Sequence record: NC_049850.1
Direction: 5' to 3' (one strand)
Length of the DNA stretch: 64,000 bases
Below the pieces are notes generated by a model. The model was not told the origin of the DNA and made no database searches. It saw only the letters and a program-made list of their open reading frames with translations. Made by a program: the position numbers and the translations under genes. Below, one piece after another: positions 8,986 to 52,322 of this stretch (positions are counted from its first letter, which is position 1; every line of letters begins with the position of its first letter).

Positions 8986-11238
8986 ATGCACCACATCCAC
9001 ACGTTGCTGCTCGAAAAGGTAGGCCCCTTTCAGAAGCGCACTGTCTTCAACATACCGCCCGGCGTAAGCACGATTTACGGGCTCAACCGCGCCTCCGGAA
9101 AAGCCTCGAAGAACAGTAACGGGGTGGGTAAGTCGTTCCTGCTTTCGATGATTCCGGAAATCATCCACGACGTTCCACAACTCGGTGAGAAGTCGGATCG
9201 CGTGAAGCAAGGCATCAAGGAACTGCGCTTCAAGAGCCACAGCGGCAAGGAAGTGATCGCGCGCCGGGCGTCGCGTGGCAAGACCGATAAGCTGGAACTC
9301 TCGATCAACGGCAAGGAGAAGGAAATCCGGACCGTGGCCGAGGCCAAGCGCGTGCTCGCGCGCCTGTTCCCGCTCACCGAGGCCGACTATCGAACGTACG
9401 TGTCCATCGACGCGCGAGTCCCGCACCCACTGGTCATGGGCTCTGGTGCCGAGCGCAAGGCATTCCTTACCGAGTTCTTCGGACTCGACAAGCTGGACGC
9501 CGAACGCAAGCTGTATGTTGCTGAGTTGTCCAAACTTTCGAAGGTTCGTGCCGCCTACGACGAGTTGCGTGCACAGATCGAGCGCGCCCGCGAAGACCTG
9601 CTTGATCGCGAAACGCTGGACCGGTTGAAGAAACGCGCGGCCACCATCAAGAAGAAACTGTCCGCGCTCCAAGCGCTGTTCACGGAGGCGCAGGAAACAA
9701 CGCGTCTCGTGGCGTTTGCTGAGTCGATGGGTCCGCAGGTGGGAATCATCCAGAACGCTATCGGAGAGATCACCGAAGAATCGTTTGCAGATCATGTGGC
9801 GCAGATCAAGTACGAGTACGAGCAGACGAAGGCCAACATCGAAGAAGCGGAAGCGTACGAGCAATACAAAAAGGACGTGGCGCGCTACAATGAGGCACTG
9901 TCCAAGGTTAGCGAATCCACCCAATCTCTTGTCGAAACGAGTGGACGTGATCTCGCGGTCGAAATGGCCAAGAACGCGTACGACGCGTACATGCAATTGC
10001 AGGGCAAGGTGCGCGTGCTCGAAGCACAAGTGGCCGAGTTGCAGGAAGAGGTAGACGCCGAGTTGCCGGAGCGCGTCAAGCGGCCGGATGAAAACGAGGC
10101 TGATCTTGAGACACTGGTTCGTGTGTACGAGCACCAGATCGAGCACGCCGAGAAGTTCTCAGAAGGTAAGTGCGAGACCTGCGGCCAGACCGTGGTCATC
10201 AAGGACCCGAAAGTTTTGGCCAAGCGCCTGAAGATCGCGAAGCAGAAGCTTTCGGCCCACGCAAAGTACGAGGCATACCGGAAGGCTCGGGCCGCGCAGC
10301 AGAAGGCTGAGGTTCAGTTGAATGCCGCTCAGTCAGAATTGGAGCGTGTGAAAGCCCAGCAGAAAAAGCACCGGGCTAACGCAAAGGCACACAAGGAACT
10401 GGCGGCACTTCCTCCGGAGCCCGAAGAGTTCACGGGCAAGAAGCTGGAATTGAAGGTGCTGCGTCGCATGCTGGAAGAGATCACGGAACGCCGGTCGCTG
10501 CTGCGACAACTGGCCGACCACCTCGATACCATCATCGCGATTCAGAAGCTGAAGAAGTCGGATATGGAGATCGTGAAGCGTGCTGAAGAAGCAGCTTCCC
10601 AGATGAGCGATCTTCAAGAGCGGCTGTCGAGCGCTCAAGCCAAGATCGAAATGCACCGCACCGTTCGTGCCCGTATCGCGGACATGAAGGAGAGGGTAGC
10701 CGAAATGGAGGCACAGCTTGCCGAGGAAGAGGCGCTGAAGCATTTGGTTCAGGGCTTCCAAGACAAGAACCTGAAGAAGATGGCTATCGAGGCTATCAGT
10801 CAACGCCTGATGGTCCTGATCAACCGGTATGCGTCACGCGTGTTCCCAGAAGCATTCCAGTTCGAGTTCCAGTGGGACACGGACATCCGGATCATCGTGC
10901 ACAGGCCGAACGGCAAGGAGCCATCGGACGTACGGAAGCTGAGCGGTGCAGAGGCCGCGATCTTCACGTTGGTGATCGTGTGTGCGCTGCTCAACTTCGT
11001 GCCCGACCACAAGCGATGCTCGCTCATGGTTCTGGACGAGCCCGACGCACATATGAGCCCAGAAATGGCCGAAGCCATGTATAATGTGGTGAAGATTCTC
11101 AACACGATGGTGCCGTCTATCGTGATCATCACGCCAAAGACGGACCGCGTGTTCCAAGACTCGAAGCCATTCACGATTGTCAAGGACGCAAGCGGCGATT
11201 CACGTATCGTAGAGGGCTTCCCTCACGAGGTAAAGTAA
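8986..11238 (+). CDS. Rad50/SbcC-like (T4 gp46-like) ATPase
   Basis: Walker A (GLN...NGVGKS), long coiled coil, CETCG zinc hook, LSGAE signature, LMVLDEPDAHM Walker B/D-loop. Confidence 0.9.
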   Translation: MHHIHTLLLEKVGPFQKRTVFNIPPGVSTIYGLNRASGKASKNSNGVGKSFLLSMIPEIIHDVPQLGEKSDRVKQGIKELRFKSHSGKEVIARRASRGKTDKLELSINGKEKEIRTVAEAKRVLARLFPLTEADYRTYVSIDARVPHPLVMGSGAERKAFLTEFFGLDKLDAERKLYVAELSKLSKVRAAYDELRAQIERAREDLLDRETLDRLKKRAATIKKKLSALQALFTEAQETTRLVAFAESMGPQVGIIQNAIGEITEESFADHVAQIKYEYEQTKANIEEAEAYEQYKKDVARYNEALSKVSESTQSLVETSGRDLAVEMAKNAYDAYMQLQGKVRVLEAQVAELQEEVDAELPERVKRPDENEADLETLVRVYEHQIEHAEKFSEGKCETCGQTVVIKDPKVLAKRLKIAKQKLSAHAKYEAYRKARAAQQKAEVQLNAAQSELERVKAQQKKHRANAKAHKELAALPPEPEEFTGKKLELKVLRRMLEEITERRSLLRQLADHLDTIIAIQKLKKSDMEIVKRAEEAASQMSDLQERLSSAQAKIEMHRTVRARIADMKERVAEMEAQLAEEEALKHLVQGFQDKNLKKMAIEAISQRLMVLINRYASRVFPEAFQFEFQWDTDIRIIVHRPNGKEPSDVRKLSGAEAAIFTLVIVCALLNFVPDHKRCSLMVLDEPDAHMSPEMAEAMYNVVKILNTMVPSIVIITPKTDRVFQDSKPFTIVKDASGDSRIVEGFPHEVK

Positions 11239-23038: not shown

Positions 23039-24412
23039 ATGGCAACAAAAGCAAGCCCACGTGCCGAACTAGCGGCGCTCCGGGCCATGACGCACAAAGA
23101 CAAGCGGGTGAGCGGAACCCTTCTCTCGCTGGTCGACGAATCGTACTTCCATTACACCGAAAGCCAAGAAGTCTATCAGGCGATCTTGCGTCACATGCGG
23201 GAAACCGGGACAACCCCGGCCTACCGTATCCTGATCGAGGACCCACAGGTCTCGGAGCAGAGCCGGAAGTTCCTGCGGGACAGCCAGCCAACCGTCACCA
23301 ACATCGACGAGGCGACGAAGACGGCACGCCTGCTCAACAAGTACAGGCAAATCCGGGGTCTGGAAGAGTTGGCCGTCCAGATCGACCAGACGCTGAACGC
23401 GAAGGGCAAACTCGATGTGAGTGCGCTGCTCGAAAACGTGGCGACTGGACTGGCAACGACCCGCAGCACCAAGAGCACGAAGGACTCGTTCACGCACTTC
23501 GGTGTCGGCAACAACGCGACGGCAATGGTCAAGGACTTGCTGTATGGTGAGGACAACGATGAGATCATACCGACCGGCATACCCGAATTCGACCGTCGGT
23601 CCGGGGGCATTGCGCGCGGCGCAATGTTCAGCATCGCCGCGACTTCGGGTGCAGGTAAGTCGACAATGGCAAACGCGCTGGCCATCAACATGGCGACCAT
23701 GGGCTACAAGGTGCTGATGGTGCCGCTCGAAATGAGCACCAAGGAAATGACGGCGCGGACGATGGCCAACATCGGTGACTTCGATGTCACGGACATCCTG
23801 CGCAAGAAGCTGGCGGCAGGCGAGCGCGATTTGGTGATGAAGCGGTACAAGCGGTGGGCCAAGAAGGTGAAGGACGCGGGTGGCCGTTACACGATTTTCA
23901 AGCCCGACATGGACATGACAATCGAAGAGGTGGTGGCCGCCACCAACGCGTACGATGTGGATGTCATGATCATCGACTATATCTCGCTGCTGAAGGGCGC
24001 TGACGGTGATGATCAGTGGCGTCAACTGGGGAGCATCGCCCGATACGCGAAGATCAACGCGGAATCCACGAACCGGGTCAACATCTTGCTCTGTCAGTTG
24101 AGCGAAGACGGGAAAATCCGGTATTCGCGAGCCATCAACGAGCACAGCAACAACGCGTGGACGTGGGCCCCGACGAAGGAGCAGAAGGAAACGGGGCTCG
24201 TGACCATCGAGCAGCCGAAGTCGCGTAACTCGGAGCCGTTCCCGTTCCCGGTGCGCATCAACTACTCGCGTATGCGGGTCGAGCAGGCACCTCAGTCCGA
24301 CGATCTGGGTGAACCGGGGGCGCTCGGCGCACCTGTGTCAACCGATCCAAAGTCTGAGCAGAGACGCAAACGTGCGAAAGAAGTGCCAAACTTGGCGGAC
24401 ATGAGTGATTAA
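23039..24412 (+). CDS. dnaB: DnaB-like replicative helicase
   Basis: TGIPEFD, AATSGAGKS Walker A, PLEMS, IIDYISLL, LCQL, KSRN. Confidence 0.92.
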   Translation: MATKASPRAELAALRAMTHKDKRVSGTLLSLVDESYFHYTESQEVYQAILRHMRETGTTPAYRILIEDPQVSEQSRKFLRDSQPTVTNIDEATKTARLLNKYRQIRGLEELAVQIDQTLNAKGKLDVSALLENVATGLATTRSTKSTKDSFTHFGVGNNATAMVKDLLYGEDNDEIIPTGIPEFDRRSGGIARGAMFSIAATSGAGKSTMANALAINMATMGYKVLMVPLEMSTKEMTARTMANIGDFDVTDILRKKLAAGERDLVMKRYKRWAKKVKDAGGRYTIFKPDMDMTIEEVVAATNAYDVDVMIIDYISLLKGADGDDQWRQLGSIARYAKINAESTNRVNILLCQLSEDGKIRYSRAINEHSNNAWTWAPTKEQKETGLVTIEQPKSRNSEPFPFPVRINYSRMRVEQAPQSDDLGEPGALGAPVSTDPKSEQRRKRAKEVPNLADMSD

Positions 24413-27683: not shown

Positions 27684-28499
27684 ATGTCGGATCAGGTGAA
27701 TGGTGAGTTGGGGGTTGGTGAGTTGGGTGATGAACGCAGTGAATCACTCAAGGGCGAGTTGGGGGCTGGTTGTGGTCTTTATGACTTTTTCGTCGCATTC
27801 AGCAACTGGCTGGAGCGCGGCGAGTCCCAGCAATCTCTCGAACACGGCCTCGGATTCTCGCGCTATTATGGCCTGTGTTCCAATCTCAACAAGTGGCTGC
27901 TTGATCGGGACCATCGACTTTTCGGGACCGACCAACACGGTCAACCGAGGGGCTGCTTATGGTACGCACGCGTCGACGAGTTTCAACGGGCACTCCAAGC
28001 GCTGTTTGCTGATCGCGGGCTGGATCGTGCGACACCGTTTGATGCTGACGAACTGGCGTACGAGCGCGCGGCGCAAGACCATACTCTATACGTCAATCAG
28101 GGACGCCTCTCGTTCATCCGCGAAGCATGTGCCGGACGCACGCTGACCACCAGCCAGATCGAGCGTGCTGTCGACGCGTTCTACATCGATATCGACAAGG
28201 CGGCTCCCCGGATCACGCGGCACACCAAGCGTGAGTTGTTCGAGCCCGTGTACGGCCTGTGCCAGAATTTCGTGTTCTGGCAGCGTGCGCAAGGCGTTGA
28301 GCGATCACGCGTGCGCACGTTCCTGAACCGGGAGCTTACTCGTGAGTTCACGGCCGCTGGTATGGATTCTCTGTACCCGTTCAACGCGGGCCGCGCAGAA
28401 AAGTACAACGCGGAAGAAAACACGTTCCTGAACCCGCGACGCCGCAAGTGGATTCGTGATCGCGCGGCCGTCGCCCTCGTACGTATGGGGGTCAAGTGA
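27684..28499 (+). CDS. Two-repeat protein (GLCxN...PFN...NxxR family)
   Basis: Two internal copies of GLC(S/Q)N...F...(T/Y)PF(D/N)...Y...NxxRxx(F/W)IR. Confidence 0.7.
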   Translation: MSDQVNGELGVGELGDERSESLKGELGAGCGLYDFFVAFSNWLERGESQQSLEHGLGFSRYYGLCSNLNKWLLDRDHRLFGTDQHGQPRGCLWYARVDEFQRALQALFADRGLDRATPFDADELAYERAAQDHTLYVNQGRLSFIREACAGRTLTTSQIERAVDAFYIDIDKAAPRITRHTKRELFEPVYGLCQNFVFWQRAQGVERSRVRTFLNRELTREFTAAGMDSLYPFNAGRAEKYNAEENTFLNPRRRKWIRDRAAVALVRMGVK

Positions 28500-29286
28500 G
28501 TTACCAGCTTTCGATGGATGATGTTCTGGGGCTGGGCCACGGCATGCACCACATGGAAACGCGTCGGGGCATGATGACGAAAGCAGAGCCTGAACCGACC
28601 CCGGCCACGCGTCCGAAGCGCGTGAACAAGGTGTTCAGGGATCGGACGATTCGTATCAGCGCCGTGGACATGGATAAGCTGGCATGGACCTATGCCGAGT
28701 ATCTGGAGTCCGACTGCCCCGATGCCGAGAAGGATGCGGCACTCGATATCGCGCACCTGATGCTCAAAGTGCTCGACCAGATTACGGACATCCGTAAGCA
28801 TCCGAAATACGTAGAAACCAGCGACGATTACGCGGAGGCCGAGGCCCAAGCCGAGCGCGAACGCAGAGCCCGGCGCGCTAAGCGTGGACAAAACACACAG
28901 GAGAAATGAGTATGGCAGAATGGAACAAGCACCACGGCCGCCCTCTCGACCGTAGCGCGTGGACGCCGGAAGAGCATTCGATCATGGATGCCCACGAAAT
29001 GAGCACGGCCCTCGAATATCTGGTTCGCTCAGCCTACAAGCTGGGCAAAATCGCGGAATCTGGCGTCGAGGTCCTGCCCATCGAGTTCCCGTTCGAGTAC
29101 TCGGGCTACCGACTGGCCGCCGCGCTGGTAATGAACCACGACGTGGACGCGTACTACCTCGAAACCGGGATAATTGACCCGCTGGTCGAGGCGCTTCAGC
29201 GCTACGAGGAAAGTGGTGGTGCAGCCCATATCGGGTACAAGACTGGGATCATGGGCAACGAGCTTGCACCCGCACCGTATCACTGA
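28496..29286 (+). CDS. Two hypothetical proteins (28496-28909, 28906-29286)
   Basis: Coupled ORFs. Confidence 0.7.
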
Positions 29287-29292
29287 TATAGT
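29264..29292 (+). promoter_or_regulatory. sigma70-type promoter
   Basis: TTGCAC-N17-TATAGT. Confidence 0.7.
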
Positions 29293-29325
29293 CGCATTAG
29301 CTCAACATGTAAATGGGAGGTAAAA

Positions 29326-30455
29326 GTGGAAGAACCGAAAGCAAAGTTTGTGGAATACCCGGAACTCGTGGGCACGGAGCGATTCGAGGCGTTTGTGGAC
29401 CAGACACTGGAAAAACACCTCGTCGAGTGGTTCGGTGAAACGGCGCTCAAAGAAGCCGAGGGCATGATCAATCAAACGCGCATCGCTAGTATGGCGCGTT
29501 CGCTGCTCAACAAGTTCCTGTCGTACGCGCGTGTTGAACAGGGTCCGCTCCTGAAGCCGGACACCGCCATCGACGCGGCACGCGCGTTCGCCAACGTCGA
29601 GTTGCGCGCCGACCGCAAGGAACTGACGGACTGGGAAACCGTGTTCGCGTCCCAACTCGCGCGCCTTCTGGTTCGGGGGCCGCAGTGATCATGGCATTCA
29701 TCAACTGGTACAAGAAACTGTCGGGCGGCCGTGCGAGCCCTATCGCGACCGTCGCAGAGGCAATCAAGCAGGCGGCCCCGGGCCCGGACTCCAAGTACCC
29801 GACCGATGTATTCAAGGGTGACCATAAGAAACTGGTGGAGGAAGCCTCCGCGTTTCTGCGCACCAACAAACCGGGTGCCGAGTTCTACATCAGGACGAGT
29901 TCTTGGGCCGAGGATGTGGTGAAGTACGTGCTGGTGGCCCTGAATCAGGCTGGTCTGTACCCGCTTTATGAGTGGCGGATGGTGGATGTGCTAAAGCGGG
30001 AACACCCGATGATCGGCGGCCGATCCAACGACTACATCCACGTGCTGACGGTGCGTGAGCCCGTACCCGCACTTACCGCGACTGACGCACGCGAGGGTGC
30101 GGACGACGCTCGCAAGGAACTGCATGCGCGGGCCGCACGCACGGCCGCCTCGGTGCTGACCGGGATCGATATCGCAGTCGACGCCGCACGTCGACGTGCA
30201 GACCTGCGTGCCAAGATCGAGCTTGCGTACGATTATCTGGACAACAAAGAGTACGAGAGTGAGCTTCTGCGGCTGCTTCGTAACGAATTGACGGCGCGCG
30301 GGTTCCAGTACGAAATCGATATCCAGCGTGTCAGGACCGGCATGTACGACCACTCGTGGCGCGTCTGCGGCACCCTCCACTGGGGCAGCGACGCACAGCC
30401 GGATTTGTTTGACGAGGTTCCGCAAAAGGTCGTGAAGGAAGGCCGTGATGGCTAA
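29326..30455 (+). CDS. Two hypothetical proteins (29326-29688, 29685-30455)
   Basis: GGAGG RBS; coupled. Confidence 0.7.
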
Positions 30456-48510: not shown

Positions 48511-48605
48511 TGTATCTGATGTATGCTGAGTCACTTTGGCTCTTTTAGGCCCTGTACGGTGCGTTTTTAATGAAGAAAACAGCATCCTACAGGGCCTTGT
48601 TACGT

Positions 48606-50486
48606 CTAGCTCTTGAGCGCGGCACGCCGGTTCTTCAGCAGCGCAATTTCCGCCTCGATCTCGTGGTTGCCGGGATCGCGTTCCAGCTTCTTGTTGAGAC
48701 GCACGATCTTGGCGCTGAGGCTTCGGTACAGCTTGATATTGTCGCCCATGGATTCAGCGAACCTGCTGCTGCGTGCCGCCTGATTGACGACGCGTGCTTC
48801 GTGCTTCTCCTGAGCCGTTGCCCCGTTGTACGACCAGCGGTGCATTGAGCCCAGCGCCTCAGTCGTGTCGACCGCGATCTTCGGGTAGTTGTGCATGCGG
48901 GCCCGGACTTTTTCCGCAAGCCCCATAGTCGACACAATGGCCAACATACGCTTCTTCGTGTTGTGGTTCCGAATGTTCCCGCGACCAAGAGACTGGATCG
49001 CCTTGTCGACCACATAGTCCTCTGCCACGTCATAGTCAGGCAGCAGCGCGGTCAGCAGTTGATCGAGCAGCGGTGGCGGATTGATGGCGGCCAAGAAGGC
49101 AACGACGTTCGAGTGCATGAACTCGTTACGTCCCTCGACGGCACCCACGCTCAGGTGATGGTAATACTTGCGGTTGAACGCGTGGCTCAGATACTCCTTG
49201 TTGACGACGACCACGCCCTGCTGCACCACGTTGTCACGTTTGACCGGAGCATTGTCTTTCCACCACGACTTGATCAATCGGTTGCTGGATTTCACCATCC
49301 ACGCAAACACGTCGACCTCGCACCCGATTTCGCGCATGTACGATTCGAGTTCGATTTGCTCGGGTTGCAGAATCCCCTTCTGCACGTCGGGATCGCGTTT
49401 GGCCCGCACCAAGTCCTGCAAGTGCTCGGTCGTCACACCCAACTCTTCCATCTTCAGCTTGAACGGCATCAGCTTTTCCACCGGCATGATGACGCCGCGA
49501 TCCAACTGGTTCTTGCTCGGCATCGCCTTGTCCATGAGAAGTGGGACAATCGTCAGCTTCTCGTATCGGGCACTGACCTCCGAATGGGCCTTACCAAAAC
49601 CGCCCGGCAGATGCTTGTTCAGGAATCGGTCGGTCTCGTTCTGGACTTGACAGCCCTCCATCTTCAGCAGGTGGTACATCTGACTGTTCTCGAAGTCGGC
49701 ACTCATGATCATGACGCTCTTGAAGCCCACGAACGGCTGGCTGGGCAACGTGATCCCGATGAACGAGCGCTTGGAGCCGTGGCCACGGAACGATCCGAAC
49801 ATCTGCATGCGCACCGGCCCATCATCACCAGTACGCAGCGCGTCGTATATGTTGACGAGCGTGCCAAACGACCGCGCGTCGCCCTTCATCTTCACGAGAC
49901 TGGCCAACCGGTTTGCGGGCAGCGAACGCGCGCGCAGCGTCATCAGGCCCTGCGCCTTCTTCCCGGTAACGCTGACGAGTTCTTCGGTATCGAACAGTTG
50001 GTGGAACAGGCGCTCGGTGGGCTCGTCGAACGTCATGTTCATGTTCTCGGTCACCCACTTGCGCGACTCGTCGAATATGACAGTCGTTTCCTTGAACTTC
50101 GGGTGTCGGCGCAACTTGATGAAGGCCGCGTGTGTCAGGAACAGAATCGAGCCCGGCAGAAATGGGAGCGGGGCCTTGGTGTCAGTCGAGCGCCCGTCGA
50201 GCGCGGCCCGGATTCTCTCGTCGACGGTGGCCGTGGTCGACGTGTGTTTGTCGGCCGAGCGCGCGTACTCAGCACGTATCATTCGCTGCTCGTTCTCGTC
50301 GAGCAGGGCCCGGAGATTACCCAGCGTCTGACGCAACAGGGCTTGGGTCGGAGCCACGTAGAAAATGTAGCCCGTGCCCTTGACGCCCCTCATGCCACGA
50401 CGGATGTGCTTGGCCATGAAGTTGACGGCGGCCCGAGTCTTGCCAAGTCCGGGAACGCCGGACACGTATTGAACGGTAATGGTCAT
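48606..50486 (-). CDS. SF2 helicase-like protein, candidate origin-binding protein
   Basis: GVPGLGKT Walker A at the extreme N-terminus, YVAPTQALL (Ia), FLTHAAF (Ib), VIFDES (II), IQSLGRGNIR (VI); likely start 50486, not 50645. Confidence 0.7.
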   Translation of the reverse strand: MTITVQYVSGVPGLGKTRAAVNFMAKHIRRGMRGVKGTGYIFYVAPTQALLRQTLGNLRALLDENEQRMIRAEYARSADKHTSTTATVDERIRAALDGRSTDTKAPLPFLPGSILFLTHAAFIKLRRHPKFKETTVIFDESRKWVTENMNMTFDEPTERLFHQLFDTEELVSVTGKKAQGLMTLRARSLPANRLASLVKMKGDARSFGTLVNIYDALRTGDDGPVRMQMFGSFRGHGSKRSFIGITLPSQPFVGFKSVMIMSADFENSQMYHLLKMEGCQVQNETDRFLNKHLPGGFGKAHSEVSARYEKLTIVPLLMDKAMPSKNQLDRGVIMPVEKLMPFKLKMEELGVTTEHLQDLVRAKRDPDVQKGILQPEQIELESYMREIGCEVDVFAWMVKSSNRLIKSWWKDNAPVKRDNVVQQGVVVVNKEYLSHAFNRKYYHHLSVGAVEGRNEFMHSNVVAFLAAINPPPLLDQLLTALLPDYDVAEDYVVDKAIQSLGRGNIRNHNTKKRMLAIVSTMGLAEKVRARMHNYPKIAVDTTEALGSMHRWSYNGATAQEKHEARVVNQAARSSRFAESMGDNIKLYRSLSAKIVRLNKKLERDPGNHEIEAEIALLKNRRAALKS

Positions 50487-51055
50487 TTGTAGAAACGTAC
50501 AAACGGTTGAGGTACTGTAAAATTGGGGATCGGGGGTCAGGTCATGGCTCGGGTCCTCTAGGACGCGGAAATAAGGTGAAAAAGTGCAATAATTGAGGTA
50601 GGTGTAGAAACGCCTCGCTCCTAAATACATTAAGGAGTGACCCATTTACACGCAGGGTGGGTTCGGGAGGGGCGCAGCCCCTTCCGGTGGGGTGAGCGCA
50701 GCGAACCCCTCACCGATCAATTCACGCAGCAACGTGTTCAACAAGGGGTCTCGTGTCTGCTCTGGGAATGCGTGTCGCTTCGCTCCACGCTGCCCACTCG
50801 CTTCGCTCGTGATTGCTGTCGCTCAGCCGGGGCTGCGCCCCGTCAACCTAGGTGCCCGGCCCGAACGTGGTTTTGACGCATTCTATTAGGAGTGGGTCGT
50901 TTATACTCACGCTCCTGAAATGCTAGTTTTTATGCTTATTTTGAAAAACAACGAAAAACCCCAAAAACGAGGGTTCTTGGGGTCTTGATGTGTGTTCCCT
51001 TACTTTGCGGTTTTAAGCATCGATTCCGCGTGTTTTTAATGAGAAAAACTACACG
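50487..51055. repeat. Non-coding region with GCG(A/C)AGC mini-hairpins, a 13-bp inverted repeat, short direct repeats and an AT-rich flank
   Basis: GGGGCGCAGCCCC 50669-81 / GGGGCTGCGCCCC 50829-41; GCGCAGC 50696; GCTTCGC 50777 and 50800; TGTAGAAACG x2; TTGAGGTA x2. Confidence 0.8.
50940..50985 (-). terminator. Intrinsic terminator (minus strand)
   Basis: Minus strand reads ACCCCAAGAAC-CCTC-GTTTTTGGGGT followed by TTTTCGTTGTTTTT. Confidence 0.6.
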
Positions 51056-52322
51056 CTATTCGGGCTTAATCTGGGCTCCACATGACGGGCAGAAGTTGAG
51101 GTGTACGACCTTCCTCACGTTCCAGTCCCCGTACTCGATGGTGTGCTCCCACAGTTCGACGAACGGGTCGTAGGTCCGCAACTGATCCGTGACCCCGAGC
51201 CCGGCCCTTACGTCTTGCAGGTATTGTGCACGCTCCGTGCAGCACGCCGTCATCAGTCTAGGTCCGCACGCAGTTGCGTGTACAGGTCGACCGCCTTCTT
51301 GGTCGGCGCGTACGCCTGCTCGAACGAGCGGCCGCCATCCGCAAGCGTCGCCTGCATGATCGGGACCGCGAACCCGTTCTCGACCAGAAAGTCGACGGAC
51401 GCCGGGTTGATCGTGGACTGGGCGACGGGCCCGTGGTCGATCATGACGTTGAGCGTGTTGATCACGGCCTGCAACCGATCCTGAGACAGGTCGATGAATT
51501 CGTACGTCAGATCGTCGTACTCGTGAACATGCGTCATCACGTCACGCAGATCGCGGTAGATTTCGTTGACCGTGCTGCTCGCCACCTGCGCGAGACGCGG
51601 CAGGATGCTCGTGTGCACGACGTGGGCCAGATGGGAGAGCCGGGCCATGCGCTGACCCACGATCAGTTCTGCTGCTGTTTGCGTTGTCATGCTTTTCTCC
51701 TTAGAACATTTCCAGTTCGGCGTTGGCGGACACGAAATACGTCTCACCACACTCGTCGCATTTCTGCTCGACGCCGCGCGGATCGCCGTACCAGCCGTCC
51801 TGCTCTTCGCCGCAGTACGGGCAGTTGATGTGCATGGCCTTGACCGTGACCGTCTGCACGATACGATGGTCATCGGCCGTGGTCGGCGGTTTCTTACCGG
51901 CCAACAGCCCGGTTTCCTTGTCGCTCATTTTCTCTCCTTGCGTTGTAAGTTTCGATCTGCATCAGATGACGACGCACTTCCACCAACGTCGAGTGAAAGT
52001 TGCGGCGCACGCGACTCTGGTTCCCAAGCAGGTAGAAAATCTCATATCCGGTTTCCCATTCGTAGCTGCCATCCAGTTGCTGAACGCGACCGGCCCACGG
52101 ACGAAAGTGCGGCTTTTCACGAATCTGGGCGGCAGTACGCGGGCACCCGGTCCCCGGATGGCGCACCATCCTGTTGGCCGAGAGCATGGCGTGCACCCGC
52201 CCGATTGCGCCGTCGAGCGTGCGGTGTACGGTGGTGCGCGGACGCTGCTGCATCCCACACGTGCCTCGCACGGTCCATCGACCCTGCTGAAACTTCATAT
52301 GCGGCTTCGGGTGGTATCGCAT
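51056..52322 (-). CDS. Four hypothetical proteins (51056-51253 and 51701-51928 Cys-rich; 51253-51690; 51894-52322)
   Basis: RBSs; CPSCG and CPYCG...CDECG motifs. Confidence 0.65.

Follow-up and report, generated by a model that had tools for sequence, protein, structure and literature searches.

The oriS origin of herpes simplex virus (HSV) is dyad-symmetric and refolds into a hairpin that is recognised by UL9, a virus-encoded SF2 helicase. Mini-hairpins are documented at single-strand initiation sites, namely ssiA and ssiB of plasmid RSF1010 and the priming sites of phages G4, St-1 and alpha3 (PMC13037366). In RSF1010 a helicase encoded by the plasmid exposes the ssi hairpins, which then serve a dedicated primase (PMC13037366). 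The first-pass annotation of the DNA analysed here had invoked the occurrence of GNA-loop mini-hairpins at phage origins and promoters, a precedent that is indeed on record (PMC13037366). As to jumbo phages, the RSL1/Saruman group included, we found no description of a replication origin in the searchable literature, from which subscription journals are mostly absent. Here we describe a gap in a jumbo phage genome holding an element related to the known mini-hairpin initiation signals. That the element is an origin is plausible and the best available reading, albeit unproven and, in our estimate, a little short of even odds.

The hairpin core and its surroundings

The window is a stretch of 64,000 nucleotides (58.4% G+C) corresponding to bases 186001-250000 of the Burkholderia jumbo phage BcepSaruman (record position = window position + 186,000). 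Positions are those of the window unless given as record positions. The non-coding gap at 50487-51055 (~570 bp) is unannotated in the public record, and its sequence was 100% identical to BcepSaruman (MK552140.1, 263,735 bp) and 98.9% identical to BcepSauron. It is flanked by two minus-strand genes, gp381 (48606-50486) and the small gp382 (51056-51253); on the + strand nothing lies downstream and there is no divergent gene. It had been called the largest non-coding gap, which holds within the window but not genome-wide, as two larger unannotated gaps exist at record 28203-29497 (1295 bp) and 9710-10453 (744 bp). No strict GNA hairpin was found in either of these in a genome-wide scan. The ORFs within the gap (79, 65 and 62 aa) gave no PHROG match, and copies of the gap differ by indels of 1-2 nt, indicating that it is not coding. 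A tRNA scan of the gap found no gene.

The whole BcepSaruman genome was scanned on both strands for C(GNA)G triloop hairpins whose stem was either perfect over at least 5 pairs or of the arrangement outer stem-GA-short stem-GNA-short stem-GA-outer stem. Only 12 strict hairpins were found in the 263,735 bp; one of them lies in a second helicase gap (gap 2, see below) and 5 are packed into the 160 bp between 50675 and 50835, a cluster far above chance. Hairpins A (50669-50681, GGGGC-GCA-GCCCC) and B (50689-50709, GGGGT-GA-GC-GCA-GC-GA-ACCCC, with tandem G.A pairs and a GCA triloop) have their GNA loops on the + strand. Those of hairpins C (50770-50790, GCGTG-GA-GC-GAA-GC-GA-CACGC), D (50795-50811, CAC-GA-GC-GAA-GC-GA-GTG) and E (50829-50841, GGGGC-GCA-GCCCC) are on the - strand. 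B, C and D share a common design, in which tandem G.A pairs stand on each side of a GC-GNA-GC mini-hairpin. Since the opposite strand has pyrimidine mismatches at the G.A positions, each hairpin has one clear folding strand. The core containing them (50661-50866) is 66% G+C, against 40-50% in the flanks.

All the motifs listed in the first-pass annotation were recovered at the positions it had given: the 13-mers at 50669-50681 and 50829-50841, GCGCAGC at 50696, GCTTCGC at 50777 and 50800, and the direct repeats TGTAGAAACG (50488 and 50603) and TTGAGGTA (50507 and 50593). Its proposal of hairpins on both strands also held, with two on the + and three on the - strand. Two of its structural readings had to be amended. 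The 13-bp inverted repeat is exact in sequence, but its arms are two self-complementary local hairpins with a common stem sequence, and their long-range pairing is not conserved. The GGTGAG/CTCACC stem assigned to the GCGCAGC at 50696 is better read as the full hairpin B. The global single-strand fold was only modestly better than that of shuffled sequences (z = -2.5 and -1.7), a point against the initiation reading, and the predicted minimum-energy fold did pair the two 13-mers long-range. We rejected this pairing as a functional structure because it is absent from gap 2, which points to the local hairpins as the selected feature.

Iteron-like repeats flank the core. The two copies of the 10-mer TGTAGAAACG are the only exact ones in the genome, and the one at 50488-50497 (+ strand), a partial iteron-like repeat, adjoins the helicase start codon. 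An outer dyad is formed by GTAGAAACG-N5-CTCCTAA (50603-50625, + strand) as its left arm and the inverted GTATAAACG-N5-CTCCTAA (50886-50906, - strand) as its right arm. The shorter motif GTAKAAACG has three copies in the gap, two direct and one inverted (flank 40% G+C), and 8 genome-wide; the composite GTAKAAACG-N5-CTCCTAA is nearly restricted to the gap. GTAKAAACG was rejected as a general (T4-late-like) promoter, given its 8 genome copies and the absence of TATAAATA, of which the BcepSaruman genome has zero copies. To the right of the core lies an AT-rich flank (50867-51055, 40% G+C). The A/T-rich tract that had been noted at 50880-51050 is real (38.6% G+C versus 58.4% for the window), but it also holds a minus-strand intrinsic-terminator-like hairpin with a T run (50955-50986), which ends the upstream gp382 operon.

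An AT-rich 17-mer, boxA (GTTTTTAATGAGAAAAA; 51032-51048, + strand), has six copies in the genome. A second one lies at 48563-48579, at the opposite end of gp381, and these two direct copies bracket the helicase-plus-gap unit. The other copies of the 17-mer, also written GTTTTTAATGRAGAAAA, are at record 9875, 99166, 112992 and 212779. The 744-bp gap includes one copy, another is inside the annotated CDS gp321, and that of gap 2 immediately precedes a sigma-70-like promoter of gp195. Around most copies there are inverted repeats, whose sequence differs from one to the next. As the orientation of boxA relative to genes is inconsistent, its role as a simple promoter was rejected.

The adjoining gp381, annotated as 'helicase' in BcepSauron, encodes on the - strand an SF2 (DEAD/ResIII-type) helicase with a DEAD/ResIII N-terminus that belongs to the phage-only family phrog_2467. 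Its AlphaFold (AF2) model (pLDDT 87) has a generic SF2 fold, whose nearest solved folds are XPD/DinG (TM ~0.4, a weak likeness) and whose close structural kin are unnamed phage proteins. Searches of gp381 against PDB sequences gave no match outside the Walker A region, and those against NCBIfam no match. A UvsW-like identity was not borne out by the sequence and structure searches. BcepSaruman additionally encodes a DnaB-like helicase and a DnaG-type Toprim primase, the latter at record ~130.9 kb. By its position alone, gp381 would be a putative participant at the hairpin element.

The second copy and the related phages

A diverged copy of the core was found at record 112,669-112,751, on the opposite strand and inside another gap, of 567 bp (gap 2, record 112.5-113.1 kb). 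Gap 2 separates gp194 ('DEAD type helicase') from the divergent gp195 and lies in front of gp194, an SF2 helicase paralogous to gp381 (36-38% identity, same PHROG); in a tree the two were old paralogues, not sisters. Five tRNA genes are located 3-5 kb from gap 2 (record ~116.4-117.9 kb), in small gaps between hypothetical genes. Taken as record 112,669-112,830 and window 50655-50850, the two cores lie in opposite orientation 124 kb from each other, as inverted repeats that could permit inversion of the intervening segment.

The most conserved part is the block at 50763-50800 (38-40 nt, including hairpin C), which is identical between the gaps except in the loop (T versus CA) and of which a metagenome relative retains ~97%. 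Between the two gaps its orientation with respect to the helicase genes is inverted. Near-identity of the core block despite helicases only 36-38% identical suggests concerted evolution or very strong selection. The 11-mer GAGCGNAGCGA has 5 copies in the genome, 4 of them within the two helicase gaps. The fifth, GAGCGCAGCGA at record 23767-23777, is within the gp060 coding sequence and flanked by a 9-bp inverted repeat.

Both gaps of BcepSaruman and both of BcepSauron were then aligned. Among these four copies, the outer stems of hairpin B vary (GGGGT/ACCCC, CAGGGA/GCCCTG and GCATGGA/TCCATGC), with three outer-stem pairs changed on both sides between copies, around a constant GA-GC-GNA-GC-GA core. 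Hairpin A of gap 2 (CCGTGC-GCA-GCACGG) has an unrelated stem and the same GCA loop, and hairpin C has a GAA, GTGA or GCGA loop, with GTAA in the metagenome relative. Loops thus vary solely within GNA/GNNA, matching the mini-hairpin DNA classes GCGNAGC and GCGNNAGC (PMC13037366). The outer inverted arms are not common to both gaps. Between BcepSaruman and BcepSauron there were 0 differences in 50599-50924, where ~5.4 were expected from the 56 in 3396 aligned bp. The hairpins are genuine, specific to a strand and conserved by way of compensatory changes, and their folded form is presumably DNA.

Homologues of the helicase were detected by tblastn in PhiXhv-12/15/16, Ep032/Ep026, BCSR5, phiRSL1 and Motura, and in all five phage records examined a divergent junction precedes the gene, with 320-800 bp of non-coding DNA. 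Scans of IMG/VR and metagenomes added 22 loci, giving 27 non-redundant helicase loci whose helicases are 19-47% identical. Taking the 700 bp before the gene as the upstream zone, we counted 33 strict hairpins in 18.3 kb upstream and 9 in the other 165 kb (1.81 versus 0.054 per kb, 33-fold, binomial p = 1.5e-25), with 20 of the 27 loci carrying strict hairpins upstream. Conservation in relatives, which had been named as a check, was therefore borne out. Moreover, C(GNA)G hairpins made up 26 of the 64 perfect triloop palindromes upstream but 9 of the 215 elsewhere, indicating more than a general excess of hairpins in non-coding DNA, and all four central loop bases occurred. Antisense-strand hairpins lay at -150 to -230 from the helicase start in 12 of 15 cases, and sense-strand hairpins farther upstream (median -345; Mann-Whitney p = 0.004, or p = 0.013 with per-locus means). 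The layout in BcepSaruman, with + strand hairpins on the left and - strand hairpins on the right, matches this polarity. The mini-hairpin cluster is confirmed, and it extends to a conserved family-wide signature.

Individual relatives agreed with this pattern. In both phiRSL1 and PhiXhv-12, the sole close pair of strict hairpins genome-wide is in the helicase gap, and the 11-mer GAGCGCAGCGA occurs once in the 231 kb of phiRSL1, within that gap. The helicase gap of PhiXhv-12 contains a 17-21 nt repeat in four copies, with zero elsewhere in 227 kb, the gap-specific 17-mer resembling the BcepSaruman iteron-like motif. The closely related PhiXhv-16 is devoid of these repeats and has two 28-nt repeats (GATTTTACTGTAACG...) instead, indicating that repeat sets change fast while the gap persists. 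In contigs of an activated-sludge relative with a ~75% identical helicase gene, 50732-50843 was kept with 3 substitutions and 2 indels, and both core flanks were replaced. This relative has both copy types. In two small public runs, contigs from relatives terminate inside 50770-50799 (region 50742-50816), as expected if the stretch is repeated in those genomes too. As an exact pattern, the conserved 40-nt block had no match in JGI metagenomes, was absent from 185,579 bacterial and archaeal species genomes and was found in IMG/VR in BcepSauron alone.

The phiRSL1 gene divergent from the helicase is annotated as 'recombination endonuclease like protein', and several other relatives have, judged by ORF size, an unannotated ORF of ~340-360 aa at that position. 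We take this size to fit T4 gp47, an Mre11/SbcD-like nuclease. A like-named recombination endonuclease gene of BcepSaruman, gp192, is two genes downstream of gp194. Synteny with recombination-endonuclease-like genes suggests that the gap belongs to a replication and recombination module.

Possible roles: initiation region, promoters, RNAs or recombination

We assign a probability of roughly 0.45 to the gap being a single-stranded DNA initiation region, that is, a replication origin or a priming site like RSF1010 ssiA/ssiB or that of G4. This reading is based on the strand-specific folds on both strands, covarying stems, DNA-type loops, repeats, AT-rich flanks and helicase linkage. Related phages have the same type of cluster before their homologue of the helicase gene, which makes the gap a good, if unproven, origin candidate. 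The gap would be a cis-acting region for the initiation of phage replication that works via single-stranded DNA. Its core carries five mini-hairpins of the GCGNAGC class, all of them very stable and three reinforced by tandem G.A pairs, and opening of the duplex would expose them as structured landing sites resistant to coating by single-strand binding protein. With two hairpins on the + and three on the - strand, such sites would be available on each opened strand. The AT-rich flanks would presumably aid the opening, as would a protein sitting on the GTAKAAACG...CTCCTAA repeats. The Toprim primase, the DnaB-type helicase or the adjacent SF2 helicase would then start outward synthesis both ways, with the + strand hairpins on the left and the - strand ones on the right directing template-dependent synthesis outwards. 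The hairpins may thereby serve for priming or for helicase loading.

Cumulative GC skew, which had been suggested as a check, came out against an origin at this gap. It is lowest near 102 kb and highest at ~235 kb. The maximum falls, 2 kb from the gap, on a convergent gene boundary, so that the position of the gap is terminus-like, not origin-like. The origin proposed by the first-pass annotation is favoured by the conserved hairpins, the flanking iteron-like repeats, the AT-rich DNA and the helicase linkage, but not by the skew. Skew decides little, however, because it follows transcription direction and because the helicase gap of PhiXhv-12 is at no skew extremum. Gap 2 lies at a divergent junction ~10 kb from the skew minimum. 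Its being at such a junction, nearer the minimum, and its synteny with the relatives make it the better primary candidate: gap 2, before gp194, is probably the primary site and the gap at 50487-51055 a second, duplicated one. According to a 2026 preprint (bioRxiv 10.64898/2026.10.21.760668), the genomes of Sarumanvirus carry terminal segments that are bidirectional, and the minus-strand block starting at 234.6 kb may be one of these, which would alter the place of the gap relative to the genome end.

A narrower version of the origin reading would unite the hairpin cluster and the phage-only SF2 helicase in one conserved origin module with the helicase as initiator. The helicase would recognise or create extruded GA-GC-GNA-GC-GA hairpins on both strands, as a counterpart of UL9/oriS. 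We regard both the module and this manner of action as rather unlikely. That the antisense hairpins keep a fixed distance from the helicase start fits a role in helicase-gene expression equally well.

The main rival to the origin reading is that of divergent hairpin promoters. The hairpins would be extruded from the template strand of supercoiled DNA, as in N4 early promoters, and drive outward transcription, of the helicase to one side and of the divergent recombination genes to the other, or else would be regulatory binding sites. The outward layout of the hairpins fits bidirectional leading-strand starts and divergent hairpin promoters equally. Hairpins on the helicase template strand are those found 150-230 nt before the start in 12 of 15 cases; in BcepSaruman they are A and B, ~190-215 nt upstream, with stems and loops of N4 type, and the GC-GGA-GC hairpin of the N4 promoter falls into the same class (PMC13037366). 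Most of the phage-record relatives examined have the gap at a divergent junction, where two promoters are needed, and no sigma-70-like promoter was found in the gap at 50487-51055 or in that of phiRSL1. Nevertheless, a search for T7/N4-like RNA polymerase (PF00940) gave no match, a weak test as that family is missing from the control genomes, and jumbo phages of this group are reported to have no RNA polymerase of their own (PMC7824862). The gap at 50487-51055 moreover retains both strand sets without a divergent gene, and a leader of 150-230 nt would be required. We consider promoters or regulatory sites of this kind unlikely.

Structured RNAs have somewhat poorer prospects. Convergent or overlapping transcripts would run over the core, for instance a long helicase 5' leader and an antisense RNA, with GNA/GNRA hairpins close to their 5' ends acting in regulation or in R-loop priming, as in ColE1 or T4 oriF/oriG. 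The GTGA, GCGA and GTAA loops of the other copies are classic RNA GNRA tetraloops, GTAKAAACG motifs in inverted orientation stand on either side of the core, each on the strand required, and the covariation is as compatible with RNA as with DNA, so that the non-coding RNA offered as an alternative in the first-pass annotation keeps that much in its favour. It fits no known RNA family: Rfam gave chance-level matches only in the gap (E above 6) and no match in gap 2 or in the gaps of five relatives. Besides, GTAKAAACG with its few genome copies, and TATAAATA with none, do not behave as a general promoter, and two opposite-strand RNAs would be needed everywhere, even where the + strand has no gene downstream. 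The public sequencing runs that matched the stretch yielded contigs of relatives, with no RNA run among them. Given that each hairpin has its purine-rich G.A/GNA elements on one strand and that both strands are used, one unwinding event is simpler than two RNAs.

A recombination element or mobile-element relic is improbable. The gap could be a cruciform or hairpin target of neighbouring Mre11/SbcD-like or endonuclease VII-like nucleases, a site favouring the segment inversions that have been reported in this phage group, or a miniature transposon. Consistent with this are the inverted cores 124 kb apart, the bidirectional terminal segments reported for relatives (bioRxiv 10.64898/2026.10.21.760668), the recombination-endonuclease-like gene beside the phiRSL1 gap and near gp194, and the boxA copies on both sides of the helicase-plus-gap unit. 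On the other hand, the inversions reported involve repeats of kilobase length instead of 40-110 bp, inspection by eye revealed no target-site duplication, and a family-wide position next to one gene is unlike the behaviour of mobile elements. A miniature inverted-repeat transposon, the other alternative raised earlier, was rejected, as there are just two partial copies and the outer inverted arms lie outside the shared part.

Comparison with known initiation systems

The candidate is precise: its hairpins are defined within a core of 200 bp, compensatory variants occur naturally, a paralogous second copy is present, and its signature recurs across phages whose helicases are just 19-47% identical. 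If it is an origin, mini-hairpin initiation signals would reach from small ssDNA phages and IncQ plasmids to very large dsDNA genomes, and an uncharacterised phage helicase family would be assigned a role. Should it instead be a hairpin promoter, the finding would be just as notable, in phages that apparently lack a polymerase of N4 type. Should the origin module with a helicase initiator hold true, it would be the first defined origin for RSL1-like jumbo phages and their uncultivated relatives, and a bacterial-virus counterpart of herpesvirus UL9/oriS. With regard to HSV, any likeness between gp381 and UL9 would be one of role, the nearest solved folds of gp381 being, and only weakly so, XPD/DinG.

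The promoters of the N4 virion RNA polymerase are hairpins extruded from template DNA, with a stem of 5-7 bp and a 3-nt loop of G-purine-A that a C-G pair closes (PMC13037366); the hairpins described here differ in being clustered, in having G.A pairs and in using all four central loop bases. In the complementary-strand origins of G4, St-1 and alpha3, GCGNNAGC mini-hairpins mark the priming site in SSB-coated ssDNA (PMC13037366). These are sites for DnaG primase, and BcepSaruman likewise has a DnaG-type Toprim primase. However, they belong to ssDNA phages and involve one strand and one site, whereas BcepSaruman is a dsDNA phage of 264 kb with hairpins on both strands.

The oriV of RSF1010 (IncQ) resembles the gap in having C(GAA)G-type hairpins on opposite strands, near iterons and an AT-rich segment (PMC13037366). 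As in an ssi-type site, the gap has strict C(GNA)G hairpins, five in 160 bp, with covarying stems, and they are on opposite strands, + at 50669-50709 and - at 50770-50841, from which we infer the direction of synthesis. RSF1010 has two hairpins, against five with a GA-GC-GNA-GC-GA core here. The partners there are RepA, RepB' and RepC; their candidate counterparts in BcepSaruman are the Toprim primase, the DnaB-like helicase and the phage-only SF2 helicase.
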